Shown here: piece by piece, positions 203 to 58,953 of the stretch
Numbering within the stretch: the stretch's first letter is position 1
Layout of the letters: each line of letters opens with the position of its first letter
Source of the DNA: Mizuhopecten yessoensis
Lineage: Eukaryota
NCBI RefSeq assembly: GCF_002113885.1
Contig: NW_018404943.1
Coordinates: 1,425,236-1,489,235 of the forward strand
Direction of reading: 5' to 3'
DNA length: 64,000 nucleotides
Translations under genes and position numbers: made by a program
Notes under the pieces: generated by a model
The model's database searches: none
What the model saw: the letters and a program-made list of their open reading frames with translations, nothing else
Told to the model about the DNA's origin: nothing

Positions 203-3200
203 ATGGGAAAACATATCTTAGGATGGAGACTTTTCTACTTGATATGTCTAGGTATGTTGTTCTTCACGTAATGTAGAGTGTACTTAGCTACACTGTAGTG
301 GTAACTATCTAATAAAACAGTTGTAAGAATATTCCTCTTAAATCAGCATTGATATGAATGTACTGGATACAACTTACATTATCAGGATCAATTTTAATGT
401 AAAGACTAAGTTTGTTTTTAACACAACCTGGAATTGAACATTATCGAAAACATTCACGCAAAACCTGAAAAACAACTCATTAAGCCACAGTTTGCTGAAA
501 AGTTAAAGTCAGCTGTTATGGTCGAGACAGCTGACTTTCCTAATTTTGTTTAAAACGCTCAGTCTTCACAATTCATACCAATCGGATGAATCTTATTTGG
601 ATATGTTTAAACATGGTTTGAGTCAATCATCGATACAGGAGGAAACATATTCCTAATTGCATTTATTAACTATACATGTGTTTTTAATGCATTTTAAAGT
701 AAAAATATTGATTGAGTTATTTACATGTATTACATAGTTGTTCATTATATTCGGTAAATATTCACTTAAATACGATGTAAGCATAAGCACTTATTTAGAG
801 ATTTAGTTTCTTGATGTTAAGCCAAACAAATGTTACGTCAGCGGATCTAAGGTCAAACGTATGAAAATCTATGTCCAAAGTGTTCCGAAATATGTTTAGG
901 AAAAACAGAAAACAGGAAAGGTGCCCATAACATTCTTATTACGTGACAAAGTTACAATGCTTAGCTACAACAGATACTTTATTCTGCAACTAGTATTTTA
1001 TGTAAATCTTGCGGTACAATATGTTAGAATGACCATAATTTCTATATTATCTGTATTCTTATTATATCTACTGGATGTGTGTACCATCGGGTCTGCACTA
1101 GTCGAGTAGACATTTCACCTTTTATACCTGGTCCGTTTTAACACGCACAATTGCACTTTTGAAATGTATCACCATCTCCTTTCATGTAGAGCGCGCTAAT
1201 TTAAAATCCGTTGAAAGACTTAAAGTAACAATAAAAATAATGATTTGATGAAAAAATAAAACGAAACGAAAACTTTGATGGTGCAAGTATCAAATTCATA
1301 GTAAAACATATTCTGTCACATTCTATTTGCTGGACACGTTAGTAGTGCTTGATAATTCTATCTAATCTTTAATTTGACATTGACATTCTCCACTGGCTTC
1401 TTTATCTTATTACATCATAGTGACTTAGCACAAAAGATAATGTATCAGTGAGGCAAAACAAGTTTGATAACAGCGCAAAACATCTATTCTGCATGCGTAT
1501 CATGTAAATTAATACATGAATCAAGGTCGTCAAATATACCTTTTTTGGAAATATAAAGAATGTTATTGTAATCAAACACGTTCGTTAAGATTATCCTTCA
1601 CCTAACAGCGGAAATATACTCATAAGCTATGTTTAAACAATATAACGTGCTATCACATATCAGGTACATGTAGTATCAACGAAACCTTTCAACAATAAAA
1701 CATGTTAAAATGCTGGGCTGACCATTCTAAATGACGTGACATTGAGAACGTTTGGGGTGTTCCTTAGTGACGCGTTAGTCGACATCAAAACCAGCCGTCT
1801 AACTTGCAGGAGCTACATGTAGCCCAATCGATAACTTATCAATGGGACAATATTATCGTTCACGTTATTCATTGTTCGGCAAAGTAATGTGACGACGCTG
1901 CAAAGCTGTTTTCTGTGCAAATGGTGATCCTACACGGTACCAAATATTTGAATGAAGAAATTCGGCTTATCTTGCTTTAACGTCTAGTTAAATAATATCA
2001 CCACGTATCTCAGTCAAGCTATGACTTTGTATTATGACGTCAAAACTCTTAACAGTGAAAACACTGTAACCTTGTTGATCGATTTGTAATTACATTGCCA
2101 AAGTATATTTTTGTTGTAAAATTTAAAAATACATGTATTTGTTATATGTGCGTACATATTACTAAGTCAAATAACAAGTATATATGTTACAAACAGATTC
2201 AATCAATCTTTTATTAACAAATTTCTTCTCTTCTACAGGATTCACAATTACAACATTCCATAGTACTGGTGCAAGATCAGTGGCCTCCACAAGACCGACT
2301 CATGTCCACGTTCTGTCTAACAGCAGTTGTTCCGATATCAATGTAACACCACTGAGCCAGAGCTGTGACTTCGACAGTGGATTCTGTAGCTTCAGTCATC
2401 CTACAGATAACCAAGACTTAGAGTGGAGGATAGCAACTTCGCCATTAACATTGTACTCAGGAGTACATTCTCTTCACGGTACAAGTTAGATTTACACCTA
2501 TTGTCATTTGAAATATTTGTCAGCTATTTGCATGAAAAACGATTCTTACCAATGCTGTGTGGTAAATAGAAAGTCAATTTACATCCTTAACGAAATGCCG
2601 GTTATAAACAAAGAAGAAAAAAAGATCTCTGATATTAACAAAGAAATCATCCCTGAACCCTTACTACATATTGTATTTTGAAAAGAAGATTACGAACTAA
2701 TTTGTCTCTAATTATAAATTTTTGATATTACAAAGTTCAAGCCTGTGTACTAATTGTTAGTTTTCAAAGTGGAGGGGCGGTCGGTGAGGAAGACGGTTCT
2801 GCCCTTGCTGACCTGTCAGTGTTCTAGAATAATAACTCTACCTGTAAGGACAAATATATATATATAATGTCCATATATCACTCATTCTCAACAAATTCAA
2901 GAATTAAATTGAACGCATCTTTGTTTATTATTTCTCTTTCGACGATGAACCACTATCCGGAAAAAGGTCGTTTTTATGAAATAAAATGGCGCTATTCGGC
3001 TTACCACGACAGGCAGAAAAAGTAACAAAACGCTGTTTAGAAATTTGTTGCGGCGACGACAAATTGCAGTTTGAGAACGTTAAAAAACCTTTTACGCTTT
3101 TTTGCAGCCAGAAAGTGAAAAAAGCAAATGGTGCCCTAAATAAATTCCATACGACCGTTATAACGAAGAGTGTAATTTACAAATTTCTTGAAAAAGTCTG

Positions 3201-5546
3201 TATATGACAATGATATAACCAAATGTTCTTTATATTAAAAGTGCATGTTTATTCATAAATGTTTCAAAGATTGCACAAGAACATACATTCAGATAAATCT
3301 TATTAGATATTACATTACCTTTGGACAATGTTTTGAACTATTTGTGGTGCTATTGTAGGAGGATCATATATTTACCCTTACACAATGTTTAAACCTAACG
3401 GCGCTAGTTCCTCTATCAACACCACAACAATCAATGGCGGGGCAGTTTGTATCCAGTTCTGGTACGCGATGACTGCATCTACCTCCAATCTGGAAATCCT
3501 TGTGGATACCAATGGTCAGGAAACGTCTGTATGGCAACAGACTGGTCGTCATGGAGATGATTGGAGGAAGGCGACAATGGCCGTTTCCAGTCAGGCTCCA
3601 TTTAAGGTATATATTTATTGCAATATAATATAATATTTACATACAAGTTTGCAAAATCGAATTTTTTCTCTTGATATGCATGCGTTCTTCGCTGTATCTG
3701 AGTTACTTGAACGCATATCAAGACTTGTCTCAGCTAGCATGCATATTGCATGAAGTGCGTTAATGACATTATAATATATGCATGCTTTGTGACGTTGTTA
3801 CATGTATGACATCACAGACCGTCTTTGCAACAATGTTATGTGGTACATCCTGTGTACGTGAATTAATTCATTGTAACTTAAGGATCCCGGTTCAACTCTA
3901 GGCAAAACATTGTAGTTAGTTTAACCTAAAAAAACTCCTCTAAGTTTGTTTCGGGTATAAATGTAGCGCAACTCGGTCAGGGTTCAACCGTTGATCGATA
4001 AGCTCAGTTGGTTACAACAACAGTTTGATAATCGTGGGGTCTAGGGTTCGAATCTTTGTCAGGCACCTTAGTATAATACATATAGAGCATTGCTGTTGAT
4101 GATTTTTTATTCAATTTTAATTATTTTTCCTCTCAAAACAGGTACAGTTATCTTTTCAGAAAAGTTAATATCAGCTATTGGATTATTTTGATATACTTGT
4201 CGTGTATATTATCTGAGAACTGATATAAAATTCACATCTTTTATTTATTTTTAAATTTGTTAATTATATCATGGCGCTCTTTGTTTTTCTTTTTGTCGTT
4301 TTACTTTACTTTCTATTTCCTTTTTTTGCAGATTCGGTTCAAATGTGTAAGAAAAAATCATGACACAAAACTAGGTTTAGACGACATAAAAATATGGAAA
4401 TTTCCATCGATTACAACGACTAAGCCAACCACTACTCCCACCACGACACCAACCACGGCATCTACCACTAAACCAACCACTACATCAGCAACTACACCTA
4501 CAACTACACTCGCAACTACACCAACCAAGAAACCAACTACTACACCATCTACAACACCAATTACTACACCCACGACTACACCAACTACTACACCCACCAC
4601 TACCCCAACCACTACACTAATCACGACACCAACAACTACACAAACAACTGCACTGACCAAGACACAAATCACTACACCAACCACGACACCGACCACTACG
4701 CAAACTTCAACACCGACCACTACGCCAACCATGACTGCAACAAGGATACCAACCACTTCACAAACCATTACCCCAAACTATACGTCAACTACTACAAGGA
4801 CAACACATACGACTTCAACAAAGATAACCACATCAGTGATATCAACAACAGCACAAACAACAACACCTACAAAAGTTTCAAATAAGATATCAACAACAAT
4901 AACATCATCACTTGCAGAAATAACACCCGATGAAACAACATCAGTGAACCACATCCATAAATTTGTCCAACACACAACAGCTAAGAAAACAAAGAAACCC
5001 TCAACGAAGCCAACGACCGAACAAGTGTCAGAAATCGTATCCAAAATAAAAAATAACATAGCATCTTCAACATCATCGGAACAATCGACAACGTCACATA
5101 AAACAACAGACCAATTGTTGGAAATATCAACAACATCGGAATTCAATACAACACAATTTATGAATACGGCGTCAATACAGAATTCGTCAATTTCTGTACC
5201 TACGTCTAGAATAAAATCATCTATTCCGACTGAAACATCGCCATATCGATCAACTACTTCCGGTCACAGAATACACCATATTACTCATGGTCCTGCGGTG
5301 ACCATGACTATTCCTGTTGGCAATATTGAGAACAAAGTCGCTCAAAATGACGGGTCGTTCACCAGCAGTCACAAAACTGGGATAATCGTTGGATCCGTTA
5401 TTGGGAGTTGTGCTGTGGTTCTGGCAGCCTTAATGGTCATAAAGAAAGCCCGGGCAGCGAAAATAAAATGTTATCAACTAGAGAAATCGTATACAAGTGA
5501 TGAATACATTCCTGGATATCTTAAAATGAAAGGAATGAAAAAGTAA
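203..5546 (+). CDS. Gene A1: membrane-tethered MAM-domain mucin-like protein (signal peptide-MAM-PTS tract-TM-cytoplasmic tail), ~583 aa
   Basis: Exons 203-251, 2239-2478, 3359-3606, 4332-5546 have GT-AG junctions and compatible phases (1,1,0). The N-terminus MGKHILGWRLFYLICLGFTITTFHSTGA looks like a signal peptide. MAM motifs: CDFDSGFC, W, G-x-Y, CIQFWYAM, W..TG..G..W, IRF, LGLDDIKI. PTTT repeats follow, then TM GIIVGSVIGSCAVVLAALMVI and basic KKARAAK. AATAAA at 5567-5572. Confidence 0.85.
3998..4068 (+). mobile_element. Degenerate tRNA-derived SINE head in intron 3 of A1 (counterpart at ~38455-38522 in A2)
   Basis: A-box-like AGCTCAGTTGGTT and B-box-like GGTTCGAATC at tRNA spacing, but no intact cloverleaf stems. 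Present in both A paralogs, so it predates the duplication. Confidence 0.5.
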
Positions 5547-5729
5547 CAAGTTTAAAAGTAGTATACAATAAAACTGTTCATGCGTGTACGAAATGAAGAA
5601 CAAACAAACTGTTGCCTTGAAAAAACGATAACTCACAGATTTTGATGGGTATTTTCAGCATTTTACAGCAAGGATATTTAACGGAAACTAAAAAAGGTTA
5701 ACAATGAAAATCAGATTAAGTTGTTTTTG

Positions 5730-5823
5730 TATGAGAATTTACAATGGTGTGTTATGAACATATGAGAATGTACAATGGTGTGTTATAAACATATGAGAAT
5801 TTACAATGGTGTGTTATTAACAC
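5730..5823. repeat. 3 x 31-bp tandem repeat
   Basis: ATGAGAATTTACAATGGTGTGTTATRAACAT units start at 5731, 5762 and 5793. Confidence 0.85.
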
Positions 5824-9200: not shown

Positions 9201-9285
9201 GAAATACAAGGAATCATCTAGTCAAGTGATCACGAGAGGTCAGAAATAACCAGCCTATTTGAAACTACTGCGCATGTACACACGA

Positions 9286-9322
9286 TATAAAGGTTTTTAC
9301 GCTTAACCAAATGTTCTCAGTT
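9286..9322 (+). promoter_or_regulatory. Putative core promoter of B1 (TATA box + initiator)
   Basis: TATAAA at 9286-9291 and TCAGTT at 9317-9322, ~33 bp apart and ~160 bp upstream of the ATG, within a block conserved upstream of B2. Confidence 0.45.
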
Positions 9323-9479
9323 CTTAGATAAGGACGGAGAAGTGATCACTACCCTGCATATATAATCTATCATATCAACAGTGAAGTCTTAGGGGGAAAC
9401 ATATCATAGAGTACTTTGAGGAAGAAAGAAATGGCATAATAGTAAAGTTGAATTTTGACTATTTGAAGGAACTGTTATC

Positions 9480-12400
9480 ATGAAGCTGGCTTGGACTTTA
9501 GTTTTGCTACGTAAGTACAATTTATGATACGTTATTATCCATGTTCACTTTCAGTAATAATAATAACTATTATTTTTTTATTTAAAATCCTAAAGAGAGC
9601 TAGAAAAGAATATAAATATGTACCAATACATACCATGTGTAACTTTTAATTTTATGCTTGGTCAGTATCTTACAGTTAGTATTACCAGTAATATGACCTA
9701 AAACACATATTCTTAATTTGTTATTTTGTTATAAATGAGGAATGATCGACTATTGCAGACTTTCTTGTCGTAGAAATTAAATTTAAAAAGTGTAAAACAT
9801 CATAATGTTGAATATTACACATACACTGTTATCACAAAAGCATAAACAACCAAGTATTTAGTTTGGATTTTTAATGTTTATATCTTTAAGGAAGTACAAA
9901 CAGTCACCCAGGTAACAACAAAAATAACACACACCAATCAAACAATAGTTAAAATGGAAGCTTAGTTACCAGATTCATATTTCGTGGTTGTTGTTAATGA
10001 TTACGCGCGTTAGCTGTCCCAAAAGGTTTTATGTCGTAAACAGTCAATAAACAACTCTCCATGTGAACCACTGTTTTAGTTTCCAAGTCAGCCAATACAC
10101 CAGCTAATCAATTTTCAACTGTAATTCAATTCGTTAAGATTCTCACATATCATAGTTTGCAAATAACAAACTTTCAAAATCTTGAAACGCAAAATATGCC
10201 ATTCTACGAATCAATTGATGTCTATAGATACTCTAACGTAACGCAATAAAATGTGTTACAAAACACCGACATATATTACATGTACTCGATCGATTAGTAT
10301 TGGCCGATTCTTCTATTGCTTACTCAATGATGTCATGACCACGTGCAGTGGCTAGATTTCCTGAAATTCAAAACCGTAACCACAAACGTAGGTTTTGAAG
10401 CCGATTTCCTGTGTTTGCTTAATTACGTGGTGTTTAAAGGGAGCTAACCCGTCTTGACATAACGTTTTTTACTAGGACTGGTGGATAATTCTTTACACTG
10501 TTTTGCTCTAAAGAATCTTGAAATTTTGTATATTCTATATTTCCTATCTAATACATATTTTCATGTAAACGATTTATTTTGACAAAAAGAACAATCATCG
10601 TGATGTAACCACAGTTATAGAATATATATGTTATTTTAAGGATTGAGAAACATTATGATATTTAGCTTCATGAAATGGGAGCATAGGAAATACAAGAAAA
10701 ACTTGGTTCAGTGTAAATGTACTAGGTATACATGTACATGTTTCAACTAATGAAATTTCATAAGAGATGTTGAACTTACAACATTGTTCAGTTAATATAC
10801 ACTTTATATATACTGTGATTAACACACTTATGAACGTGTTTGAACTTGAATAAGTCAGTTCTATTCGCTATGACAATCACAATTGTCAATCCTGATGCCT
10901 ATGACATTTCTTTATCAAACCAGCGCCCTTAACAAAGTGAACATCTGTGTACACGTGGTATCGGGGTTTTAAGCGAGCAATCTTTATATCTTTCATATCG
11001 CAAGAAACGTATTAAAAACACTCTCAAGGCCTAAAACTCACCGAAATCAAATACCAGCAGATATGTGCATCCTCAGATAATCTCTCGACCTAATGGTATC
11101 TCTTGTAAAGTCGCGATCTGTGTTCACACTTCCTTCTCTGGGAGGCTCGAAAAACTTTATCAGTACGAATTTAGTTTCACGGGATACTATGGAATGTAAA
11201 TTCACAAAAGGATATAGAAAAGCAATGAATTAAAATGTCTGGTTTACCCTCATTCATAAGTATAAAGTATAAACAAAATTGATATCTGCCACTTATTATT
11301 CGCTAGAAAAGATTTCAATTTAAACGCATTTGAATGTATATTTAATGTACAATGCATTTATAATACAATAAAACAAGTTGTTAAAAGTCTCTCTGTATAC
11401 ATGAAGTACTGCTGGGCGAGCCAATTCGAGCGACATCGTGAAAATGTTAAAATAATAAGTTAGAAGTGATATACTGTGATAACTAAGTGATACTTTGTGT
11501 GTTGACAATGGTGAATTGTCCATCGTGGTTTTGTGTGTTGACAATGTCTAGGGTGTAGTGTGTTAACATACTTATTTTTAGTTGCAAGTTGGTTGATAAT
11601 TTCAAAAGGGTACTTTGACTCAATCCCAATTACGGAAGTGACAAACTCTGAGCAAATTTTCGCTTAAGGTCATCGGAGTGTATTGATAAACGGACTTAGG
11701 AAGTACATCCCTTGTTGAAAATCCAATGTAGGGAGACAGTATCACAATTTCCGCATATTCTAATGTTTAATATCAAACGGATGAATATTGTATGTTTATT
11801 ATTGACAGAACAGTGTGTTCTCGCAATATTAAAGTATTTCAAAGCAATCCAGGCATTAATGCAGGTTTTTATTTATCAATGAGTCACATGTGTCCATTTT
11901 TCTGTACTTTAAGAAACCGGCTACCTATTTCACTACTGTGAAGTTTTTCAAGAACGATAACTCTAACATGCAATTACTATGTGTATGGGTTTATTATAAA
12001 ATGTAAATTTTTAATCGTTTATAGATAAAAAAAAATTAATCAGTTTCAGAATTTATCAAATTGATATACATTAATGCAATACTAATCTATGGCAGTTTTT
12101 TTTTTTTGACATTATTTTGCAGACAATTGTGTCTTTAATTTTTTTTTCAAAATCCACTCCTTTTTACATAAATTTCCATTTAAAATCCTGAAAATTCCGA
12201 CAACCTATATTTTTTTGTTGCAATTTTTTTCTTTACTTCAAAGCAATATAACTACAAAATTTGAAGAAATTCTACTGAGAAATGGTGACACAAACCTACA
12301 TAAATGTCTTACCTTAAAAAGAAAGTTAAATAACATTAGTAAGGATCTTTAAGGAAAGAAATGTTATTGTATCTGCTAGGTCTGAATAAAAGTACATTAA

Positions 12401-15400
12401 TTATACATAACACGACACTTGAATTTTAAAACTGGACAATAGAAACACGTTTTTTATTTCTCAAATGCAAATCATGTTTTTAATATTTCACAGTTTTTGT
12501 CCTTGAATGTTGATAATGTGAAATACAGTCAAACCTGCTTGAGCGGTCACCTGAAATGAGCAGCCACCTCCCTAATGTGGTCAGTCTGTGGTCCGTCCGA
12601 TAGAAAAAAACTATATAATGAACCTGAAATAAGCAGCCACCTGTCTAATGCGGCCAGCGGCCACAAAACTCTGGCCCGAGACGTTATCTCCACCTTCAGC
12701 AGTCATTTTGTCCAGAAATTGACATCAAGAAAATCCCAATATATTAACAAGAACACATCCCAATAGAGCAAAGCTAATTACAATGTGTAATTAAAAACCA
12801 TAGGTAAGGTTTGACACGTTGAATTGACAAGTTGTTTACACAGCGATTTTCAGCTTGCAAATTGGGACAGGTCCTACCGACCCATCAACATTGTTTTACA
12901 AACAAAACAATAAATCCCACTTTGTGTACTCAATCAGCTTGTGATTTTTTAAAACAAGTATGATCTTTTGTGGTATCTGTACATACTGTATCCAAAGCTA
13001 CTCAGGCCTAATATATTATGTGATCAAAAAACTTGCCGCTATATTGCATGCGAAAACAGATCTGCTTCCGGTCTGCCAGTCACTATTTCTATATCAACGA
13101 AGCAGACATCATGTCAAAAGGATAAATTTCACAGCGCAGACGCTGAATCAGATTTTTGTTTTGATTAATTCGTCGTGATTTATTTCTATAATATAATAAT
13201 TTGGTTTTTAATAGCTGTGCGAGATCAGGACATTAGTGTTAGCCTTTCCATAAGGCGCGTGGGTGCTGTGAATAAACCGTTACGCTAAGTTGAAAGCTCA
13301 AAGATTCTTGCAAAGTACTAGATCTACTGAGTGATTTATTTATAAATGATGAATTAAGTTAATTATTTGATCCACATAGATCAGAATACATAGCAATGCA
13401 GATTTTCATTAAAATCAGATATACATGTAGATTTCATTACTGGTGGTTGTCTGCTAGCGCAAAACGTATGTGGAACACGTGTGTAGCCAAACAAAAATAA
13501 ATTCATCATTTCAAGAAATTAATCACCAAAACGCCTTTGTATTTCATTGATTATGCAAATTTATATTCAGGTATGAATTCGTACCCCTGTTGATGAAGGG
13601 AGAAAAATTCAAAATAACATAGCCGCCTATATTTCCGGTGAAATGTCATTATAACCCGTGGATGTATGGAAACTTGGTTGTGATTTTCGGGTGAGCCTGG
13701 TTTTAGCAGCCACCTGTCTTAAGCGGCAAATTTCTGCCGGTCCCTTGGGTGGCCTCTTAATACAGGTGTAATGTGTCCGTGCTTGGTGACACTTCACACT
13801 TTATTTTGGTTCTTTTTAATTTTTTGAATGATAATTTAATTTAATTTCTTTTATGTTTTGCAGATATCTTAACATCAGCGTGGCTATTTAGTGATGCAAG
13901 ATCAGTCGCCTCAGTTCCACCAACTAATGTCCAAGTTCTGTCTAACAGTAGTTGTTCCGATATCAATGTGAAATTACTTAGCCAGAGCTGTGACTTCAAC
14001 AGTGGTTACTGCAGCTTCAGTCACCCGACGGATTACCATGACTTACGGTGGAGGATAACATCTTCAACATATTACGCAGAAGTACATTCTCTTCATGGTA
14101 ATTTAACGTGTTATCATAAAAAAGATTTGTCTCAAAATTGGTTATTTATACAAGTTTGATTGCAATAGTATTTGTTGAGCTTATTGATGTTGAGCGATCT
14201 ATCTTTCAGAGAATTAATAACGATTTCTTTAAATTCTTATCATCAAAAATGTTTTATCTCTGAATGCAATAGAAATAACAAACATTACTTTTTCAAGCTG
14301 ATATCTCTGTTAATATTTTAAGACCTATCTGATTGTTTTTAAATTATGAAACTTATTCAGAAAAGAACTTTATATTCTTGTCCTTCTGCAGCTATTTATT
14401 GCTTCCATGGAAATATATTTACTCTCATTATTCACACTTATACGATCGACTTAATGTGACGGAGTACTATGTAATCGCCGCATAATGTATTACGATATCT
14501 CTTGTTTGACGTAGGTGTCTTTTAAATAGGTACATATTGCTTATAATCATATCACTGTAGCATAATTTTTGTATAATTACAGGAGGGTCATATATCTACC
14601 CATACATGTTGGGTAGACATGACGGCGCTAGTTCCTCTATCAACACCACAACAATCAATAGCGGGACTGTGTGTATCCAGTTCTGGTACGCCATGTCAGC
14701 ATCTACCTCCAATCTGGAAGTCCTGCTGGATACCAACGGTCAGGACACATCGCTATGGAAACTGACTGGTCGTTATGGAGATGGTTGGAGGAAGGCGACA
14801 TTGGCTGTGTTCAGTCAAAGTCCATTTAAGGTAATGATATTACATAGTAGCCAACTGCCTCACCTCCATGTGTTATAGATATCATACATATGACACGATG
14901 AAACAACATATTCATCATCATCTGCAGTAGGAACAGAAAAATGATGATATAAACCAAAAATATGGTGGCATATTTCTGCCATCCACTTGCGACTTACGAG
15001 TTACGTATGTCCACATAATTATTGAAAGATGTCAACATAATCTGAGAAGATGTCGACATATCTTTTAAATTATGTCGACAGATTATCACATTTGCCGAGA
15101 TAATTATCTCGTAAGTGGGTAACTCGGCTTTTTATCGTGTTAATGCTCGGGTGTGACATCGACTTGCCACTTACGACTTGCCAATTACGACTTATTTATG
15201 TCGACATCCTATTAGATTATTGCCGACTTACCAAAACGAGCCTTGTGCACGAGGACCGCGAAGGGGGGCTGATGGTGACTGAACAGTGGTGACTATACTG
15301 GTGAGTAACTTGGTAAAATCAATTTAAATATGGGAAATCAAAGATATGAATATTACAGTAGGTTACTATGATGTACAGAGTTTATCAATCAAAGAGGGAT

Positions 15401-40000: not shown

Positions 40001-40534
40001 ACAACTACACAAACAACTACACCAATAACTACACCTACAACTACACCAACCACTACACCAGCTACCACACCTACAACAACACCAACCACCACACCTACAA
40101 CTACAGCTACAACTACACAAACAACTACACCAATAACTACACCTACAACTACATCAACCAATACACCAACCACGACACCAACAACTACTTCAACCACTAC
40201 ACAAACAACGAAACCGACAGCGACAACGACCACGACTCCGACCACTACGGCAACCAGTACGACAACCGCTTCGCTAACCAGTAGACCAACTACTACAGGG
40301 ACGAAACGTACGACTATACAAAAGCTAACATCATCAGAGATATCAACAACAGCACAAACATCAAACTGGATAATCGTTGGATCCAGCATTGGGGGATGTG
40401 CTGTAGTTCTGGCAGCCTTAATGGTCATAATGAAAGTCAAGACGGCGAAAAGAAAAAAAAATCAACTAAGGAAATTGTATATCGGCGATGAGTTTATTTC
40501 TGAACATCTTAATATGAAAAGAATGAAAACGTAA
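31060..40534 (+). CDS. Gene A2: membrane-tethered MAM-domain mucin-like protein, ~770 aa
   Basis: Exons 31060-31108, 35119-35358, 35962-36209, 38759-40534; exons 1-3 have the same sizes as in A1 (49/240/248). Signal peptide MGTFILGWRLFYLTCLGFTISTF, MAM motifs, uninterrupted (PTTT)n tract, TM WIIVGSSIGGCAVVLAALMVIM and a basic tail. Confidence 0.87.
32052..34362. other. ~2.3-kb insertion in A2 intron 1 relative to A1 (unclassified, probably mobile DNA)
   Basis: A1 reads CTCATAAG-CTATGTTTAAACAA contiguously (~1619-1640), but in A2 the two halves lie at ~32044 and ~34366. No clear TIR or coding signature. Confidence 0.5.
37171..38334. mobile_element. Non-autonomous DNA transposon with ~37-bp TIRs in a TTAA site (Kolobok-like)
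   Basis: TTAA|AGCTGACAGTACAAGTTAAAATGGCTTTCAATCAAGA ... TCTTGATTGAAAGCTTTTTAACTTGCACTGTCAGCT|TTTA. Empty site TTAA-GGATCC at 3878-3887 in A1. Confidence 0.82.
38845..40200 (+). repeat. Coding 12-bp repeat (ACACCTACAACT; PTTT) with 108-bp higher-order units
   Basis: Visible directly; higher-order units start at 39781, 39889, 39997 and 40105. Confidence 0.9.
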
Positions 40535-47815: not shown

Positions 47816-50800
47816 ATGAAGCTGGCATGGACTTCCGTTTTGCTACGTAAGTACAATTTATGATACATTATTATCAATGTTCACTTTCTGTAATAATTAT
47901 TAATTTCTTTAATTTCTTTTTTAATTTTTATGTACATGTACCGATATACACCATGTGTAACTTTTTTATTGTAATTCGAAATGGCAATATACCAAATATG
48001 ATTGGTCAGTATTTTATAGTTAGTATTGCCAGTAACATGAACTAAAACACGTATTCTTAATTTGTGATTGTGTTTTTAAATTTAGAAATATTTCCTGTAA
48101 AGCATGAAATGTAAAATGATCGACTATTACTGATATTCCTGTCGTAGAAATTAAGTTTTAAAACTGTTAAACACTATAATTTCGAATATTGCACAGACAC
48201 AGCTAGTTATCACCAAGGCATAAACAACCAAATATTTAGTATGGATATTAAATGTTTATATTATTAAGGATGTACAAACAGTCACCCAATTAACAGCAAT
48301 AAGTATACACTGCAATCAAACAATATTTCTATTAAAGCTTAGTTACCAGATCCCGATTTCCAGCTTGTTGTTAATGTAAGCTGCCCCAAAATGTTTTATG
48401 TCGTAAACAGTCAATATACATCTGTACATGTGAACTAATGTTTAAGTTTCCGAATCAGTCAATACACCAATTAATCAGTTTTTAACTGAAATTCAATTCG
48501 TTAAGTTTCTTTAATATGATAGTTTGCAAATAACAAACTTTCATAATCTTGAAACGCAAAATATGCCATTCTACGAATCAATTGGTGTCTATAGACACTG
48601 TAAAGTAACGCAATTACATATGTACATGTATTGGCCGATTCTTCTATTGCTTACTAAATGATGTCCTGACCACATGTGGTGGTACGTTTATTGGCTAGAT
48701 TTTCTTAAATTCAAAACCGTAACCACAAACGCAGATTTTGAAGCTGATTTCCTATGTTTGCTTAATTACGTGGTGAATAAAGGGAGCTAATCCTTCTTGA
48801 CATAACGTTTTTATACTTAGACTGGTGGATAATTCTTTACACTGTTTGCTCTAAAGAATCTTGAAATTTTGTACATTCTATATTTCCTATCTAATACATA
48901 TCTTCATGTATACGATTTATTTTGACAAACATAATAATCGTCGTGATGTAACCACAGTAATATATATTTTATTTTAAAGATTGAGAAACATAAATGTCAT
49001 TATGATATTTAGCTTCATGAAATGGGGGCATGGGAAATACAAAAAATACTAGGTTCAGTGTAAATGTACTAGGTATACATGTTTCAACTAATAAAATTTC
49101 ATAAGAGATGTTGAAGTTACAACATTGTTCAGTTAATATACACTTTATATATACTGTGATTAACACACTTATGAACGTGTTTGATTTATGAATGATGTTG
49201 AATAAGTCAGTTCTAATCGCTATGACAATCACATCCTGATGCCTATGACATTTCTTTATCAAACCAGCACCCTTAACAAAGTGGAAATCTGTGTACACGT
49301 GGTACATAATGTATCAGGATTTTTAAGCGAGCAATCTTTATATCTTTCATTTCGCAAGAAACGTATTGAAAACACTCTCAAAGCCTAAAACTCACCGAAA
49401 TCAAATACGAGCAGATAGGTGCACCCCAGACAATCTCTTGACAACCTGGTATCTCTTGTGAAGTCGCGATCTGTGTTCAGACTTCCTTCTCTGGGATGCT
49501 CGAAAAACTTGTTCAGTACGAATTTAGTTTCACATGATAATATGGAATGTAAATTCACATACAATAAAATGTAATGATATAGAAAAGCAATGAATCAAAA
49601 TGTTTGGTTTACCCTCATTCATTAGTATTAAGTATAAAACAAAATTTATATCAGCCACTTATTTTTCACTATAAATGATTTCAATTTAAACGCATTTGAA
49701 TGTATATTTAATGTACAATGTATTTATAATTCAATAAAACATGTTGTTTAAAGGTCTCAGTCTCTCTGTTTACATGTAGTACTGCTGCGCGAGTTAATTC
49801 AAGTGACGTCCGAAAAATGTTAAAATACTGAGTTAGAAGTAATATACTGTAATAACTAAGTGATATTTTGTGTGTTGACCATGGTGAATTGTTCATCGTG
49901 GTTTTGTGTGTTGACAATCTGGTATATTATATTCCTGACAGGTGACTCTAGGGTGAAGTGTGTTCACATAGGTATGCTGTATTATACTTAACATACTGAT
50001 TTTTAGTTGCAAGTTTGTTGATCATTTCAAAAGGGTACTTTGACTCAATCCCAATTACGAAAGTGACAAACTCTGAGCAAATCATCGCTTAAAAAGACTG
50101 TTAAATAACATTAGTAAGAATCTTTAAGTAAAGAAATGTTATTGTATCTGCTACATCTGAATAAAAGTACATTGATGATACATAACACGACACTTGACGT
50201 TTAAAACAGGACAATAGAAACATGTTTTACATTTCTCAAATGCTAATCATGTTTTTAATATTTCAAAGTTTTTGTCCTTGAATGGTGATGATGTGAAATA
50301 ATGTGTCCCTGCTTGGTGACACTTCACTTTATTTTTGTTCTTTTTAATTTTTATATAATGATTTACTTTGATTTTGTATTATGTTTTGCAGATTTTTTAA
50401 CATCAGCGTGGCTATTTAGTGATGCGGGATCAGTGGCCTCCACCAGAGCGACTAATGTCCACGTTTTGTCTAACAGCAGTTGTTCTAATATCAATGTAAC
50501 ACTACTGAGCCAGAGCTGTGACTTCGACAGTGGTTACTGTAGCTTCAGTCATCCGATGGGTTACCGTGACATAGAGTGGAGGATAACATCTACAACATTT
50601 TACGCTGGAGTACATTCTCCTCACGGTAATTTAACGTATTATCATAACAAAACCTTTGTCTCAAAATTGATTATGAATACAAGTTTGATTGCAATGGTAT
50701 TTGTTGAGCTCATTTGATGTTGAACGATCTAGATCTCTCTCTCAGAGAATTAATGACGATTTCTTTATGTTTTTATTATCTAACATGTTTAATCTCGCCT

Positions 50801-53800
50801 GGTCTGGTTTCAACAGAAATTCTTGCAAATATAAAACATTACTTTTTTAAGCTTATATCTTTGCTAATGTTTAAACACCTACATGTATCTGAATTTTTTG
50901 AATTGTGAAACTTACACAGAAAAGAATTGTCCTGTTCTTCTGCATACAGTTAATGTTTCCATGAAAAGATCTTTACTTTTATAATCGACACAAATACGAT
51001 CGTCTTTAAGTAACGTGGTTCAATGAAAACGCCTGATAATGTATATAAATGTATATTCATACACTCTGTATGACAAAGGTGTGACTTTTCAATTTGAATA
51101 TACATTTGTGGGATCGCACAACGTTACACGATGTGCGGTGTGCGCACGATGTGTGCACGAAGTGTTAACGATAACAAATGGACGACAATTGTTTGCGCAC
51201 ATTTGTGCGGACGATCGAAGAACGTTGTAGTGGCGGACCCAGGGGTGTTGCCTTAGTTGCCCGGGCAACACCCTTTCTTCTGTGTCCAAAAATAATCTGA
51301 CCTTAGGTTTTTGAAGATTTTCCTCTTTTTATATGGGATTTTCTTCTAATATCAACCATCCTGTGAACTATGATGTTCTATGTCAAGCAGCAGTTTGAAT
51401 ATCTATATATGCCTAAGGGTCCAGTTGCCCAAACAAGGAGTCCACTACTTATACTCTAAACAATAGGGGGTTAATCCTCTTTTGTTTATATATTAGTAGG
51501 ATCTCCAGTCAGGTCAGTGGTGAAGGCTCAACGGACTGTCTATCAAATATTGGTTGAAACTAATTAAATACGACAATTGTGTTCTTAAGTCAGTTTATGA
51601 AGATATGGATGAATGTAATCACAGAAACTGTAATTGGCGTTGTCAAGCTAGAAAATTATTATTGTCTTCTGGTTTTGGTAATGTCTGGTTAACTCATTAT
51701 GTTGATAATGAAAGGGTATTTTAACATTGTTTCAAGCAGCGTTTGACAGATGTTTTTTTTTCAAACAAGGAATGAATTTGCTGAAAGATCATCTAAATGT
51801 TATTTGTATAAATTCCTGATAGATAACTTTACGTTACAATTTTATCTAACAAAGTCTATTCCAGATGCGTATTTTAAACTTATTGCGAAATTACGACTTT
51901 CATCGCATCAGTTATATGTAGAAGAAGGTCGGTATCATAATATTCCGAGGGCAAATAGGTTATGTCGTTATTGTAATCAAAACCAGGTAGAGGACGAGTT
52001 CCATTTTGTTCTGATTTGTCCACTCTGTGTTGATATTCGTAAAAAGTTCATTAAAAAGTATTACTGGAGCCTCCCATCTTCATATAAACTTGTCCAGCGG
52101 GTATCTGTACGTAACAGAAAAGAGCTGTGTAATCTAGGAAAGTATATGCAATCAAGTTGGTTAGAACGGTCTAGATTCCAACCTTAGGTTATTGTGTTTT
52201 TTCTCACACTGACTGATAACATTTGAGTACTTGTTTATTTCCAGGTTAACACATATTATTTTGTCCATCCCCTGATCACTACACCAATGTATACAAATTG
52301 TATGCCTGTTTTTTTGTTTTTCTAATTAACATACTCTTTATTGAGCGCCGGTTGTTATTATGCGTAGAACATGTTGTCACCTCATCTGTTTTCCGATAGC
52401 CACAGTACACTTAGTTGAGGTAATTTTACAAGAGCTGTCCATCTTCCGATTAATTATTTATCTTGTACTTTAAAATAATTTAAAGAATTATACTATCCAT
52501 TTATAGGTACTATATATATATATATATGCGATGTACAAGATTATGCTTCATTCATGATGTTATAATTATTTGGTATTTCATATTACTGATGTATCAATTA
52601 TACGTTGCTGTGTGTGCTTATGAGCCGTAAGGCTTCGAGTTGAATAAACATTACAATACAATACAATACCTAATCGTATTGTTCTAATGTCACGGTGTGG
52701 TGATCACCCTGTCCGTTGAGAGAGGATAAAACCATCTGTTGGAATTAGGTATATATGTTAATTGTTATTTCAAAGGTAGAGTCCATTTCATGATAGCTAA
52801 ACCTGTATTTTCACCTGTGGTTTTATGTACACATGATCACCAGGAGCAATCTGATTAAAATCATATGTTAAAGGCTTCGTTAATCAGATTGCACCAGGAG
52901 TGTTTTATTATACCTGTTAAAAAATGTAAACTTCAAAAATTACAAAGCCAAAAAAGCATTCACCTTAGCAATCTAATTATATCTTCACATCGCTCCCGTT
53001 TTACGTTTTAAGTTTAGTATTACATCTTCAGAACAAAAAAGTCGTGCCAGAAAGTAGTATACATGTACAACCTACATGACAATTATAATTTGTTAGTTTT
53101 TTTGAGTGTTTTTCTGAGTTTAAAAAATAGGCAAAACCCAAAATTAATTCCTGGTNCCCCCCCACCCCCTGCGTTGTGCGATAACAATCGTGGTTGGTGT
53201 AAATTGAGGAATGACTTGAATAACAATATTTACGGTCGGTGTTTAAACATATAAACTTGATTGTTTAGTATGTTTCTATATTCTATCTTCATCTATAAGC
53301 TTATCTTTCTGTCTATACTTTCTTAAATTTAGAAATTGTGTTTTCGGTGTATTTTAAAAGACCTTAATCGACACATGTAAAATTACAACACAGTCTCGGC
53401 AACACAGGTAAACATAGCCACTTTGTACCTGGACCGTAGTTTTCCCCCGCCCGGGGCACTTACGTAACTCGCCAAGGTGTGAAAACCAGGCGATGGGAGC
53501 TATAGATGAGACCGAATGCAAATAACAAATGCTCAACGTCTAGTTGTGTTTTCATAACGGTCATGTCAGGCACAGGCCAGGTAAAACTCCGGTCACTCAT
53601 CAAATTGTTATTTACCTGTTCTGTTACCTAGCTAGGAGCAAAATCCATTCTTGACAGTCTAACGGTCACTGTATACTGTGTTACACGCATTGTAAAATTG
53701 TACGTAACCTTCATTATTGTGATGAAAAATGACAGTAATTTATACAGTGTACATTATTGCATACGAGCTTCCGGTTTTTTTCATTCCGTAATATTGATCA

Positions 53801-56800
53801 ACAAATTGTACCAAATCGCACAGTTGTGCTGGGAGAACGATGGTTAAATCGCCCAGTTGTGCGCACCATGTGTGGACGATGTGCGGACGGTGTGTGAACG
53901 ATGTACGCACGGTGTGCGCACGGTAGTTTTGGTGCGTTGTGCGGTCACACAACTGTATTGCATATAAACATATAACTGTAGCACACTATTTGTATAATTA
54001 CAGGAGGGTCCTATATTTACCCATACACTGTCGGTAAACATGACGGCGCTAGTTCCTCTATCAACACCACAACAATCAATGGCGGGGCTGTGTGTATCCA
54101 GTTCTGGTACGCCATGACACAATCTGCCTCCAATCTGGAAGTCTTGGTGGTTAACAACGGTCAGGAAATGTCGCTATGGAAACAGACTGGTCGTTATGGA
54201 AATGATTGGAGGAAGGCGACATTGGCTGTTTCCAGTCATGTTCCATTTAAGGTAATGATATTATATAGCAGCCAACTGCCTCACCTTCATGTGTTATAGA
54301 TATCATACATATGACACGATGGAACAACGTCTTTATCATCATCTGCAGTGGGAACAGAAAATGGTACTATAAACCAAACCACTTTTAACAAATCAGATCA
54401 TCAAATATTTCTATATCTTTGCAACAAAAAAAATCGCGCTTTACAATGTAATTTACATTTCCTTTGTACAGTCCACAGGTAGACCTAAATTAATGTATCA
54501 ACCAATGATTTTTCTTATAATCGAACAACAGCAGGAATCACTGAAAGTTTCGAATCGGAAACTGTTCGGGTCTTACCGTCAAACTGTTTGAGGAATCGAT
54601 CTCAATATCATGGCCTGACGTGACGTAAAATTTAAATTTACACGGCAAAACGTAAATTAAAAATCCGTGTCAGATTAAGACAGGTGTATTGGCTTCCTTA
54701 TTATTGTTACCCTAGAAACCGTCAGATTTTTACAAATGTAGAAAACTCTTCGTCAAATGAGGATATATCGAAGTATCTGTTATTTTACCAGAGGGACATA
54801 CATACTTGACACTTGCCGAGTCAATATCTTAATTCCATTATCTTAAGAATGCATACTGATAAAAAAAGCAATCACAAATTACATATAAAAAAGTAGGATT
54901 TTGAAATATCTCCACTTGCACTGTGTCGCCGCTCATGGAGAAGAAAGTAATACACTCGAACCTGACACGTATTAAGACTCAGACTCAGTACCAGTAACTA
55001 ATGTATTCTTCTTATAACTCAAAGCAATTTTTAATACGCTTTTGTAATTTCGAACGAGTTTGCCCCGTAGACCGCAGATACGCCTGTTGTTATTGAAACA
55101 TGCATGTTTTATTTATGTAGTATTTCCTTTTGTGTTGCATTCTGGTATCAAAGGACATTACATCGTTAACTGATATTATGGTTTAATAATACATGATCAC
55201 CGTTTATTTCTTTTTCTTTTCACATTGTCCAATTCCAAGCTCCGTAGTATGTAGATGTTTACACAGTAGAAAAAGATAATACATACAGTTATGTACATGT
55301 AACCATGTATATTATGTATATTTTTCAGATTCGATTCAAATCTGTCAGAATCAACTTTGACTCAAAACTTGGCTTAGATGATGTAAAGATTTGGAAATTT
55401 CCAAACACTACGACACTATCAATGACGTCTGAAACGACGACACAAACGACCAAAACGTTGCCATTGACAACACCAATATCATCAACAACAACACAAACAA
55501 GTAAACCTTCGACAACAACGCCAACGACAACAACACCCACTACAACACCACCAACGACAACAACACCAACGACAACCACACCAACGCCAACAACACCAAC
55601 GACAACAACAACAACGACAACAACAACAACGACAACAACACCAACGAAAACCACACCAACGAATACAACACCAACGACGACAACACCACCGACAACCACA
55701 CCAACATCGCCACCACCAACGACGACAACACCAACGTCGACAACACCAACGCCAACCACACCAACGACGACAACACTAACGACAACCACACCAACGTCAA
55801 CAACACCAACGACAACCACACAAACGACAACAACACCAACGACAACGACACCAACGACAACAACGCCAACGACAACCACACCAACGACCACAACCCCAAC
55901 GACAACCACACCAACCACAACAACACCAACGACAACCACACCACCGACAACCACACCAACGACAACAACTCCAACGACAACCACACCAACGAACACAACT
56001 CCAACGACAACCACAGCAACGACAACAACACCAACGACACCGACAACAACGACAACAACGACAACGAAAACAACGACAACGTTAACAACACCACCGACAA
56101 CAACACCAACGACAACCAAACCAACGACAACAACACCAACGAAAACAACACTAACACCACACCAACGACGACAACACCATCGACTACAACACCAACGACA
56201 ACCACACCCACGACGACAACACCAACGACAACCACACAAACGACAACAACACCAACGACAACAAAACCAACGATAACCACACCAACGACAACCACACCGA
56301 CGACAACAACACCAACGACAACCGCACCAACTACAACCACACCAACGACAACAACTCCAACGACTACAACACCAAGGACAACCACACCAACGACAACAAC
56401 CCCAACGACAACCACCCCAACGACAACAACACCAACGATAACCACACCAACGACAACCACACAAACGACAACAACACCAACGACAACACCCCCAACGACA
56501 ACCACTCCAACGACAACCACTCCAACGACAACCACTCCAACGACAACCACTCCAACGACAACCACTCCAACGACAACCACACCAACGAAAACCACACCAA
56601 CGACGTCAACACCAACGACGACCACACCAACGACAACCACACCGACGACAACAACACCAACGACAACCGCACCAACTACAACCACACCAACGACGACAAC
56701 TCCAACGACAACCACACCAACGACCACAACACCAACGAAAACCACACCAACGTCGACCACACCAACGACGACAACACCCTCGACGACAACACCAACGACA

Positions 56801-58953
56801 ACCATACCAACGACGACAACACCAACGACAACAAGACCAACGACAACCACACCAACGAAAACCACACCAACGAAGACAACACCAACGACAAACACACCAA
56901 CGACAACCACACCAACTCCAACAACACCAACGACAACACCACCAACGACAACCCCACCAACGACACCAACACCAACGACAACCACACCACCGACAACAAC
57001 ACCAACGACAACGACACCAACAACAACAACACCAACGACAACGACAACAACGACAACAACAACAACGACAACCACACCAACGACAACGACACCAACAACA
57101 ACAACACCAACGACAACAACCCCAACGACAACCACACCAACCACAACAACACCAACGACAACAACACAAACGACAACGACAACAACGACAACAACGACAA
57201 AGACAACAACGCCAACGTTAACAACACCAACGACACCAACACCACCGACAACAACACCAACGACAACGACACCAACAACAACAACACCAACAACAACAAC
57301 ACCAACAACAACAACACCAACGACAACCCCCCCAACGACAACCACACCAACGACCACAACACCAACGAAAACCACACCAACGACAACCACACCAAGGACA
57401 ACCACACCAACGACAACAAAACCAACGACAACCACACCAACGAAAACCACACCAACGACAACTACACCAACGACAACAACACCAACAACGACAACACCAA
57501 CGACAACCACACCAACAACGACAACACCAACGACAACCACACCCACGACAACAACACCAACGACAACAGTACTAACGACAACCACACCAACGTCGACAAC
57601 ACTAACGACGACAACACCAACGACAACCGCACCAACTACAACCACACCAACGACAACAACTCCAACGACTACAACACCAAGGACAACCACACCAACGACA
57701 ACAACCCCAACGACAACCACCCCAACGTCGACCCCACCAACGTCGACAACACCAACGACAACCACACCCACGACGACCACACCAACGACGACCACACCAA
57801 CGACAACCACACCGACGACAACAACACCAACGACAACCTCACCAACGACGACAACGCCAACGACAACCACACCAACGACAGCAACACCAACGACAACCAC
57901 ACCAGCGACAACAACACCAACGACAACACCCCCAACGACAACCACTCCAACGACAACCACACCAACGAACACAACTCCAACGACAACCACAGCAACGACA
58001 ACAACACAAACGACAACGACAACAACGACAACGCTAACAACACCAACGACAACAACACTAACGACAACCACACCAACGACGTCAACACCAACGACTACAA
58101 CACCAACGACAACCACACCCACGACGACAACACCAACGACAACATCACCAACGACAACAACACCAACGAAAACAACACTAACACCACACCAACGACGACA
58201 ACACAAACGACAACCACACCAACGACAACGACACCAACGACAACAACGACAACGACAACACCGACAACGTTAACAACACCAACGACAACAACACCCACTA
58301 CAACACCACCAACGACAACAACCCCAACGACAACCACACCAACGACAATAACACCAACGACAACAACACTAACGACAACCACACCAACGACGTCAACACC
58401 AACGACGACCACACCAACGACAACCACACCGACGACAACAACACCAACGACAACCTCACCAACGACGACAACGCCAACGACAACAACACCCACTACAACA
58501 CCACCAACGACAACAACCCCAACGACAACGACAACAACAACAACAACTACAACGACAACCACACCAACGACAATAACACCAACGACAACAACACTAACGA
58601 CAACCACACCAACGACAACGACACCAACGACAACAACGACAACGACAACAACGACAACAACGACAACGACAACAACGACAACGTTAACAACACCAACGAC
58701 AACAACACCAACGACAACGACACCAACAACAACAACACCAACGAAAACAACACTAACGACAACAACACCAACGACAACGCAAATGACAACGCAAACGATC
58801 ACTCAAACGATGAAACCAACAACTTCTACGTCGATCAAACCTCAACATCCAAACTCCGGTTTTTCGGCTATAAACCAGCAAAACGAAATATCCTCTGGAA
58901 AGGTTCATAACACTGATATCCTCATGTTTTATTTGCATTCGTCATGGTCGTAG
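47816..58953 (+). CDS. Gene B2: secreted MAM-domain mucin-like protein with (PTTTT)n tract; as assembled a frameshift at ~56157 gives a stop at 56276 (~486 aa), while the ancestral stop is TAG 58951-58953
   Basis: Exons 47816-47846, 50392-50625, 54004-54251, 55329-(56276/58953); exons 1-3 have the same sizes as in B1 (31/234/248). Signal peptide MKLAWTSVLLHFLTSAWLFSDA and MAM motifs. The same -1 frameshift motif occurs at ~56157 and ~58184. C-terminus HNTDILMFYLHSSWS*. Confidence 0.8.
51103..53955. mobile_element. TA-flanked DNA transposon remnant (Tc1/mariner-like TIRs) carrying nested insertions
   Basis: TA|CATTTGTGGGATCGCACAACG ... CGTTGTGCGGTCACACAACTG|TA, with subterminal GTGTGCGCACG repeats. 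Absent from B1 intron 2 (~14535). Confidence 0.7.
51540..52670 (+). mobile_element. 3' fragment of a non-LTR retrotransposon (ORF2 C-terminal CCHC region + 3'UTR)
   Basis: ORF 51750-52187 has KLRLSSHQLYVEEGRY...LCRYC....EDEFHFVLICP, typical of LINE ORF2 C-termini. Ends in AATAAA plus an (ACAAT)n tail at ~52643-52669. Confidence 0.75.
55505..58780 (+). repeat. Coding 15-bp repeat (CCAACGACAACCACA; PTTTT), ~3.3 kb
   Basis: Visible directly; internal block duplications. Confidence 0.93.

Follow-up and report, generated by a model that had tools for sequence, protein, structure and literature searches.

MAM domains of meprins and of RPTPmu oligomerise, and vertebrate tethered mucins carry SEA domains, not MAM. 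The nearest known architecture to the scallop genes described here is found in insects, in the class C scavenger receptors dSR-CI to dSR-CIV of Drosophila and SR-C of Spodoptera frugiperda. These are type I membrane proteins whose N-terminal head contains a MAM domain and is followed by a mucin-like stalk rich in Ser and Thr, one transmembrane (TM) segment and a short tail (PMC6191154); some members of the family are membrane-bound and others are predicted to be secreted (PMC8721182).

Scallop A-type genes share the Ser/Thr-rich stalk, single TM segment and short tail of these receptors, and the MAM crystal structure of S. frugiperda SR-C (8yt7) was among the best matches to the head of the B-type gene B1 (TM 0.69/0.66, rmsd 2.9), whereas Pfam searches found neither a CCP (sushi) domain N-terminal to the scallop MAM nor a somatomedin B domain after it, ahead of the stalk. 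Scallop stalks are also far longer than those of insect SR-C and built of tandem repeats, and ligand binding is suggested here by analogy. Zonadhesin likewise joins MAM to a mucin-like tract, a TM segment and a short tail, but with multiple MAM domains and large arrays of VWD/TIL, while Pfam shows one MAM per scallop gene and neither VWD nor TIL. Neuropilin-1, meprin alpha/beta, enteropeptidase and RPTPmu/kappa have the same MAM fold and Pfam family, although their MAM domains are membrane-proximal or lie among other domains, with no PTS stalk. MUC1-type tethered mucins and MUC2 resemble the scallop genes in the tandem-repeat Thr/Pro-rich exon, to which the A-type adds a TM segment and short tail, but Pfam searches detected no SEA domain of the MUC1 type in the scallop genes and, in XP_021348435.1 or the last exons searched, no VWD/C8/TIL or cystine knot as in gel-forming MUC2.

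We consider it reasonably probable that the locus is an array of scallop cell-surface receptors of recognition or scavenger type, each a MAM head on a mucin stalk, with the B-type genes as derivatives. The four intact A-type genes and a divergent C-type gene would encode type I membrane glycoproteins in which a signal peptide and one membrane-distal MAM domain precede a stalk rich in Thr and Pro, a single TM helix and, at the C terminus, a short cytoplasmic tail. The stalk would keep the head well away from the membrane, the head may bind ligand, self or foreign, and the conserved tail may provide a link to uptake or signalling. It is by analogy that the locus reads as a receptor family, the model being insect SR-C, which has CCP and somatomedin B domains that are missing here. 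If true, scallops made a family of recognition receptors by placing one MAM head on a mucin stalk, a minimal form that elsewhere is seen only as part of insect class C scavenger receptors, and the locus would bear on the mucosal immunity of a farmed species.

Extent and gene structure of the array

The window, by which we mean the whole 64,000-nucleotide stretch analysed, contains A1, B1, a relic, A2 and B2, in that order; the four genes are collinear and have four exons each. Self-BLAST and exon alignments confirmed the four-exon plan and the alternation of types described in the initial annotation, which had also placed the outer limits correctly, at the A1 start ATG (203) and the end of the B2 stop (58953). 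In window coordinates, all on the + strand, A1 occupies 203..5546, B1 9480..22277, the B-like relic 27618..27837 and 28838..28960, A2 31060..40534 and B2 47816..58953. The window spans the central part of a longer tandem array of the Yesso scallop, Mizuhopecten yessoensis, in which at least seven genes and the relic share one strand over ~120 kb, with two intact A-type genes upstream (-40683..-27398 and -21336..-5863) and a divergent C-type MAM-mucin-TM gene downstream (+69094..+77800). A-type genes (A1, A2 and the upstream Am1 and Am2) number at least four and B-type genes two, and two of the former lack a neighbouring B. The array is apparently confined to scallops; the Argopecten irradians homologue, a truncated gene of two exons, lacks a PTS exon within 10 kb and is therefore uninformative on synteny. 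Single N letters occur in the window at 53156 and 63373.

Duplication of a two-gene cassette, as initially proposed, was not demonstrated, as A1 is no nearer to A2 (77.8% non-coding identity) than to the upstream copies Am2 (78.0%) and Am1 (79.9%); the corresponding value for B1 and B2 is 82.2%. Because gene-flank pieces are the only sequence common to the A-to-B spacers, and A1-A2 identity is not raised, the alternation of types is the sole support for a cassette duplication.

Every one of the 12 introns runs from GT to AG, the phases in each gene being 1, 1 and 0. Each gene encodes a signal peptide, one MAM domain across exons 2-4 and a Thr/Pro-rich last exon, and the SP-MAM-PTS architecture first proposed is supported. 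Introns of like type (A-A, B-B) can be aligned over 47-91% of their length, with 73-91% identity, while A-B comparisons returned zero HSP even at word size 7, bearing out the earlier observation that introns are alignable within but mostly not between types. First exons and upstream regions also differ between A and B.

Exon 1 of A1 (203..251) supplies the start codon and the greater part of the signal peptide; it ends in phase 1 at the donor CTAG|GT and is conserved in A2 and both upstream A copies. Exon 2 (2239..2478; acceptor and donor mapped) carries the signal peptide end, an N-terminal Cys segment and the MAM start, with a weak Pfam MAM match at profile positions 1-30, and exon 3 (3359..3606) carries the MAM core (41.6 bits, profile positions 43-130). 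Exon 4 (4332..5546), with 404 open codons, encodes the MAM end, a Thr/Pro/Ser stalk, a TM segment at about 5382-5441 (TM score 2.61), a 33-residue tail and the stop. A2 follows the same plan, with exons at 31060..31108, 35119..35358, 35962..36209 (MAM core, 35.8 bits) and 38759..40534, the last with 591 open codons for the MAM end, a TTTP stalk, a TM segment at about 40370-40429 (TM score 2.36), the tail and the stop.

The first exon of B1 (9480..9510) encodes MKLAWTLVLL plus 1 nt before a GTAAGT donor, and was placed via the N-terminus of XP_021348435.1. Exon 2 (13864..14097) is identical to that protein and the junctions of exon 3 (14583..14830; MAM core, 35.7 bits) match it, while exon 4 (16578..22277) covers the MAM end, a repeat array, a conserved C-terminus lacking a TM segment and the stop at 22275-22277. 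In B2, exon 1 (47816..47846; MKLAWTSVLL plus 1 nt) is followed by exon 2 (50392..50625), exon 3 (54004..54251; MAM core, 39.2 bits) and exon 4 (55329..58953), which runs from the MAM end through a TTTTP repeat array to a stop at 58951-58953 in frame +1. An alternative B exon 1 at 12313-12525 / 50088-50300, a block of 91.5% identity between B1 and B2 that holds a short ATG...AG|GT frame, was dropped, as XP_021348435.1 places exon 1 at 9480 / 47816. The relic comprises a B-type exon 2 (27618..27837) with acceptor CAA, 6- and 7-nt deletions and a frameshift, and a partial exon 3 (28838..28960) containing TAG; its flanks resemble B introns and the acceptor is lost.

MAM head, stalk and anchor

Exon 3 alone matched Pfam MAM (PF00629) at 35.7-41.6 bits in all four genes, above the gathering score of 26.4 bits, so the MAM assignment held. 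A genes were searched exon by exon and the public B1 protein (XP_021348435.1) served as the spliced form for B1; its score was 63.1 bits, the match covering positions 1-152 of the 158 in the profile. The AlphaFold2 model of the B1 head (pLDDT 89.6, pTM 0.86) is a jelly-roll beta-sandwich MAM fold; Foldseek matches at ranks 1-23 in the PDB were all MAM-containing (E 2.5e-9 to 3e-6), with neuropilin-1, enteropeptidase, meprins, S. frugiperda SR-C and PTPRK/M at the top. A search of the ESM Atlas returned generic MAM clusters only, and identity to any non-scallop protein was 21-31% over the MAM domain. MAM cysteines C1, C2 and C3 are present in the family, but unlike other aligned MAM domains, in which the column is nearly invariant (at least 90% conserved in 41 domains), the scallop family lacks the C-terminal Cys. 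Exon 4 of three of the four A copies has an extra Cys (FKC), with Ser at the same place in B copies. About 30 residues precede the MAM domain, the PTS region starts at most about 5 residues past its end, and no domain other than MAM was found by Pfam in the last exons searched or in XP_021348435.1. Head dN/dS was 0.21-0.50 across all pairs, and at 0.50 for B1-B2 (Fisher P = 0.01) the B heads are kept under purifying selection. A complex prediction for two copies of the B1 head, run without controls, scored 0.00 and speaks neither for nor against binding.

Overall, Thr makes up 30-61% of the last exons and Pro 8-17%, with Thr at 49-58% in Am2, Am1 and A2, Pro at 15-17% in Am2, Am1, A2 and C, and 30% Thr and 8% Pro in A1. 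Tandem Repeats Finder (TRF) identified tandem repeats of 12, 15 and 24 bp, the A2 stalk being a 12-bp TTTP repeat, and repeat unit and copy number vary freely among copies. These long Thr/Ser/Pro-rich tandem repeats are of mucin type (PTS), and the stalk is presumably O-glycosylated. The last-exon ORFs of A copies are intact (404-999 codons) and that of the C gene reaches 2154 residues. A strong TM segment is present in A copies (Kyte-Doolittle 2.4-3.1 over 19 residues), followed by a tail of 33 residues that is conserved in all four and contains Tyr/acidic motifs; B copies have no TM segment (Kyte-Doolittle maximum 0.38), which upholds the distinction drawn initially between A genes with an anchor and tail and B genes with neither.

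Disrupted B exons, transcripts and public records

The B last exons are dominated by arrays of a 24-bp repeat in B1 (17134-21524, + strand, 182 copies) and a 15-bp TTTTP repeat in B2 (55510-58778, + strand, 218 copies). They are not clean ORFs. In B1, frame 0 is closed by a first stop at 18018-18020 and further stops at ~20886 and ~21006, and three +1 register shifts occur at ~19279, 20096 and 20244. In B2, register shifts at ~56154 and 58181 accompany a frame-0 stop at 56274-56276, after the first shift, and the conserved C-terminus is read only in frame +1. The C-terminus of B copies is homologous to the A juxtamembrane segment, with B1 and B2 agreeing in frame and stop position, and its alternative frame encodes hydrophobic residues followed by basic ones. 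B-type genes would be derivatives with a different first exon and signal peptide, whose anchor may have been lost by frame disruption in the TM-coding segment prior to the separation of B1 and B2. Since their heads are under purifying selection, the B products were probably once secreted MAM-mucins; at present the giant repeat exons appear interrupted and B1 seems silent where A1 is expressed. Read in this way, the locus would record a change from anchored to anchor-less form, marked by frameshifting of the TM segment, a new first exon and runaway growth of the repeat arrays.

Four runs presumed to be RNA (X1-X4), a type that is guessed, contained 0.32-0.33 of A1 words, against an A1 exon share of 0.32-0.35 and about 0.9 of A1 words in DNA runs. 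Judged from word share alone, a spliced A1 transcript appears in these four runs, which come from three studies. No contigs covered B1 exons 2 and 4 in the same runs, leaving the expected co-expression of A and B unsupported.

The spliced B1 model corresponds to XP_021348435.1, an automatic NCBI model of M. yessoensis named "mucin-2-like, partial", a mislabel that reflects composition only. In the protein collection, queries with A1 and one upstream copy (region 230-404 of A1 exon 4 and region 640-865 of Am1 exon 4) brought up none of the four A-type genes (two in the window, two upstream), so that no independent gene model stands behind the A genes; a B1 head query within 238-756 aa matched only B1 itself. 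The literature search returned no paper naming XP_021348435 and none joining MAM domain, mucin and scallop. One scallop MAM paper was rejected as a match, as it concerns a meprin-like cadmium binder of a different family. The initial view that this is not a named family stands for the architecture, but B1 already had a public record and insect class C scavenger receptors are a close analogue.

Alternative readings of the locus

The initial annotation had secreted B docking on tethered A through MAM-MAM contacts in a mucus or glycocalyx layer, or B acting as a decoy. A and B heads are 72-80% identical and, in exons 2-3, as alike between types as within them, which is compatible with such a pair, as are selection on B heads, the oligomerisation of meprin and RPTPmu MAM domains and the membrane-bound and secreted paralogues of insect SR-C. 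We nevertheless regard it as improbable, given four A-type versus two B-type genes with two A lacking a B neighbour, unlike first exons and upstream regions, interrupted B repeat exons, and B1 exons 2 and 4 without contigs where A1 appears to be present; the anchored and anchor-less types are distinct in sequence, but their functional coupling is unsupported. Exon-limited gene conversion could instead have kept the heads alike, giving one head in membrane and soluble forms as a paired receptor and decoy, with introns, first exons, stalk repeats and anchors type-specific. This would parallel dSR-CI/II versus dSR-CIII/IV and draws on the likeness of exons 2-3 between types though A-B introns have nothing in common. 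The best P value of a Sawyer-type run test for conversion tracts was 0.03 among 10 pairs, non-significant once corrected, and we judge this version unlikely.

It is quite unlikely that A and C are purely structural membrane mucins, forming a glycocalyx or lubricating barrier with MAM for cis-oligomerisation only and no part in recognition or signalling. Their long Thr/Pro-rich last exons, of 404-999 residues and 2154 in C, and the free variation of repeats as in vertebrate tethered mucins would suit this role, but the tail motifs are conserved across four paralogues, the head sits at the distal tip under purifying selection, and vertebrate tethered mucins use SEA in place of MAM. Decay of the B genes would be illusory if B1 and B2 were intact giant secreted mucins of ~2,070 and 1,380 residues and their stops and shifts short-read assembly errors. 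That explanation seems rather unlikely, even though the three B1 shifts sum to a multiple of three and return the conserved C-terminus to frame, the C-termini of B1 and B2 hold one frame with an in-frame 9-nt gap, and no other arrays of the locus are as homogeneous as those of B (82-83% matches across 3.3-4.4 kb). The B2 frame change is net, De Bruijn mis-joins would be expected to gain or lose whole units and not 1 or 4 nt, and B1 was unexpressed in the runs tested. Across 15 kb of comparable PTS exons on the same contig, one 6.5-kb ORF included, there were zero disruptions, while all eight of those in the array (five repeat-register shifts and three stops) fall in B last exons (P = 0.0005), and the two anchor-less B copies look partly decayed.

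Gene models and the MAM head

This window of eukaryotic DNA is AT-rich and contains two single Ns and four blocks with a strong A/C skew. Self-BLAST resolved two collinear gene pairs, the anchored MAM-mucin genes A1 (73-5625) and A2 (30935-40633) and their anchor-less counterparts B1 (9199-22286) and B2 (47536-58962), while similarity between A and B was confined to only three short blocks per gene, whose alignment gave the exact exon borders. The length of exon 2 depends on type (A, 240 nt; B, 234 nt), that of exon 3 is constant at 248 nt across the four genes, and exon 4, encoding the Thr/Pro/Ser (PTS) stalk, starts at 4332 (A1), 16578 (B1), 38759 (A2) and 55329 (B2). Exon 1 lies at 203-251 in A1 and 31060-31108 in A2, and at 9480 in B1 (MKLAWTLVLL) and 47816 in B2 (MKLAWTSVLL, one substitution), with GTAAGT directly after each B copy. 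All 12 introns are GT...AG with phases 1, 1 and 0, in agreement with the shared four-exon plan of the initial annotation. The A genes were analyzed exon by exon, and signal peptides and transmembrane (TM) segments were assigned by hydropathy and inspection.

A profile search with exon 3 against 1.84 billion representative proteins recovered P0008, a 432-residue protein that is identical letter for letter to B1 exons 2-4, matches the predicted junctions and begins with MKLAWTLVLL. It is XP_021348435.1 of Mizuhopecten yessoensis, titled “mucin-2-like, partial”, such that B1 already exists as an automatic NCBI model, under a misleading name. An alternative placement of B exon 1 in the conserved block at 12313-12525 was ruled out by the P0008 N-terminus, which is encoded at 9480.

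Exon 3 alone matched Pfam MAM at 35.7-41.6 bits in all four genes (gathering score 26.4) and the spliced B1 protein at 63.1 bits (profile positions 1-152 of 158), with no other Pfam domain found in the last exons searched or the spliced B1 protein. AlphaFold2, supplied with 41 other MAM domains, modeled residues 21-200 of B1 at a pLDDT of 89.6, and the best 23 PDB matches of the model were all MAM domains, including those of neuropilin-1, enteropeptidase, meprins, Spodoptera SR-C and PTPRK/M. The proposed MAM domain in each gene is thereby confirmed. The heads, the MAM-bearing mature N-termini, are only 21-31% identical to non-scallop MAM domains and lack the C-terminal Cys present in nearly all other MAM domains. 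Codon 5 of exon 4 (4344 and 38771 in A1 and A2; 16590 and 55341 in B1 and B2) encodes Cys (FKC) in three of four A copies vs. Ser in both B copies, giving five cysteines, an odd number, in A heads and four in B heads; the extra Cys is a possible site for an intermolecular disulfide.

The wider array and possible exchange between heads

We searched the whole genome (988-Mb assembly, 82,659 contigs) in six frames with the exon-3 profile and examined 70 kb of flanks. The search returned the four window genes, an exon-3 remnant (with a TAG) of the relic, a decayed B-like gene, and three further matches on the same contig. The flanks contain two intact A-type genes upstream of the window start (minus coordinates), at -40683 to -27398 and -21336 to -5863, with last exons of 999 and 865 codons, respectively, and the same TM and tail as A1 and A2. 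The nearer gene has a shortened, more divergent MAM domain (dN ~0.25-0.28 to others) and an exon 1 peptide identical to that of A1. A third type, gene C, lies downstream of the window (+69094 to +77800) and combines MAM exons with an undisrupted last exon of 2154 codons (82% Thr/Ser/Pro) that has a TM of its own and a tail of 55 residues; its MAM exons are divergent (exon 3 36% identical) and the tail is Tyr-rich.

The array thus reads A, A, A1, B1, relic, A2, B2, C. Across all pairs of the four A genes, non-coding identity falls within 76-80%: A1-A2, at 77.8%, is no closer than A1 to either upstream gene (78.0% for the farther, 79.9% for the nearer), while B1-B2 share 82.2%. What the two A-to-B spacers have in common is limited to the 3′ flank of every A gene and the 5′ flank of both B genes. 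These near-equal identities and flank-limited spacers are explained by a burst of tandem duplications. An A-B adjacency does occur twice, as the initial annotation recognized, but duplication of the cassette as a unit, though possible, is not needed to account for the array.

Introns of A and B yielded zero HSPs even with sensitive settings, in line with the initial annotation, where most were seen not to align, whereas in exons 2 and 3 between-type p-distances (0.10-0.18) equal those among copies of one type. Exon 2 has no informative site that unites B1 with B2, while the initial 78 nt of exon 4 fully separate the A copies from the B copies. Across the heads, 587 of 1035 informative-site pairs failed the four-gamete test, and a run test found no significant conversion tracts. 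Gene conversion of the heads limited to exons is a fair reading of these patterns, though not an established one.

Probable anchor loss, interrupted B exons and expression

The last exons of A1 and A2 are uninterrupted (404 and 591 codons), Thr- and Pro-rich, and terminate with a TM segment of 20 residues followed by a 33-residue tail conserved in all A copies, while no hydrophobic segment was found in B last exons (best 19-residue window 0.38), upholding, at the sequence level, the distinction between anchored and anchor-less types. B1 and B2 share a short C-terminus, in the same frame with an identically placed stop, the start of which resembles the A juxtamembrane segment; an alternative frame still encodes a hydrophobic stretch with basic residues after it. 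This fits loss of the anchor by frame disruption prior to the divergence of B1 and B2. Nei-Gojobori counts over the mature head, summed per exon, gave dN/dS of 0.21-0.50 in all 15 pairs, and the B1-B2 value of 0.50 (Fisher P = 0.01 against equality) shows that B heads remained constrained after anchor loss.

B stalks are built of a 24-bp unit in 182 copies (B1) and a 15-bp unit in 218 copies (B2). In B1, frame-0 stops occur at 18018 and twice near 20886-21008, and the repeat register shifts by +1 at ~19279, ~20096 and ~20244, passing through MENIN and HGEHQ readings and back into frame. In B2, the register shifts at ~56154 and ~58181, a stop closes frame 0 at 56276, and the conserved C-terminus is encoded in frame +1. 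Predicted products up to the first stop are ~651 (B1) and ~486 (B2) residues. All eight disruptions fall within 9.3 kb of B exons vs. none across 15 kb of PTS exons from the A- and C-type genes of this contig, among them a 6.5-kb ORF (P = 0.0005); the source would be either true decay or errors peculiar to the two most homogeneous arrays.

The A1 stretch 150-5700 was partly present in 13 same-organism runs guessed to be RNA. Its word share was 0.32-0.33 in four runs of one study, matching the exon share of 0.32-0.35, and 0.24-0.26 in three runs from two other studies, vs. ~0.9 in DNA runs. B1 (11100-17050, 5951 letters) was checked against contigs of four of these runs, from three studies, in which A1 appears to be expressed, and no contig covered exon 2 or the unique start of exon 4. 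Exon 3 was represented only by low-depth pieces of 44-86 nt over its most conserved core, which carry 14660 A>G, the letter of every other copy and not of B1, and so derive from paralogues. The only well-covered parts were intronic repeats (11697-12298 and 15122-15385), abundant in RNA-type contigs at a summed depth of up to 539; their 1-5% mismatches indicate that the contigs are probably transcripts of transposon copies located elsewhere. B1 is therefore without detectable expression where A1 appears to be expressed, A1 being judged by word share and B1 by contigs, which show presence better than absence, and these runs do not support co-expression of A1 and B1.

Known relatives, possible mode of action and interspersed repeats

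MAM folds and PTS stalks are each already known. Among described architectures, that of insect class C scavenger receptors (CCP, MAM, somatomedin B, Ser/Thr-rich stalk and TM) comes closest, but neither CCP nor somatomedin B occurs in the scallop proteins, which are thus not members of that class. Searches of the protein collection with A1 and one of the upstream copies recovered no A-type protein, and our literature search returned no paper on a scallop MAM-mucin family. Its description as unnamed holds for the architecture, although B1 exists as a database entry. In Argopecten irradians, XP_069138809.1 (CM084273.1:7151067-7172943), from a truncated two-exon gene with no PTS exon in the 10 kb downstream, has a 58% identical head.

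The MAM domain of an insect class C scavenger receptor directly binds ligand (PMC6191154), and the family has secreted members (PMC8721182). A and C have the layout of recognition receptors: a small globular head is carried on a long rod, presumably O-glycosylated, that leads to a single TM and a short tail, which is conserved and bears Tyr/acidic motifs. By analogy with the insect receptors, the heads probably bind ligand and the tail then drives uptake or signaling. B proteins, putative former soluble versions, may bind A, compete with it or simply be in decay.

Between A2 and B2 lies a 19-bp satellite (40949-43548, 138 copies, 88% matches), and a 145-bp tandem repeat of 3.7 copies (8667-9204) ends exactly where B1/B2 upstream homology starts (9199). 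On the forward strand, an ORF downstream of B2 (60996-62480) contains a YADD motif and is similar to LINE-type reverse transcriptases, and a reverse transcriptase C-terminus fragment lies inside B2 intron 2 (51750-52187).
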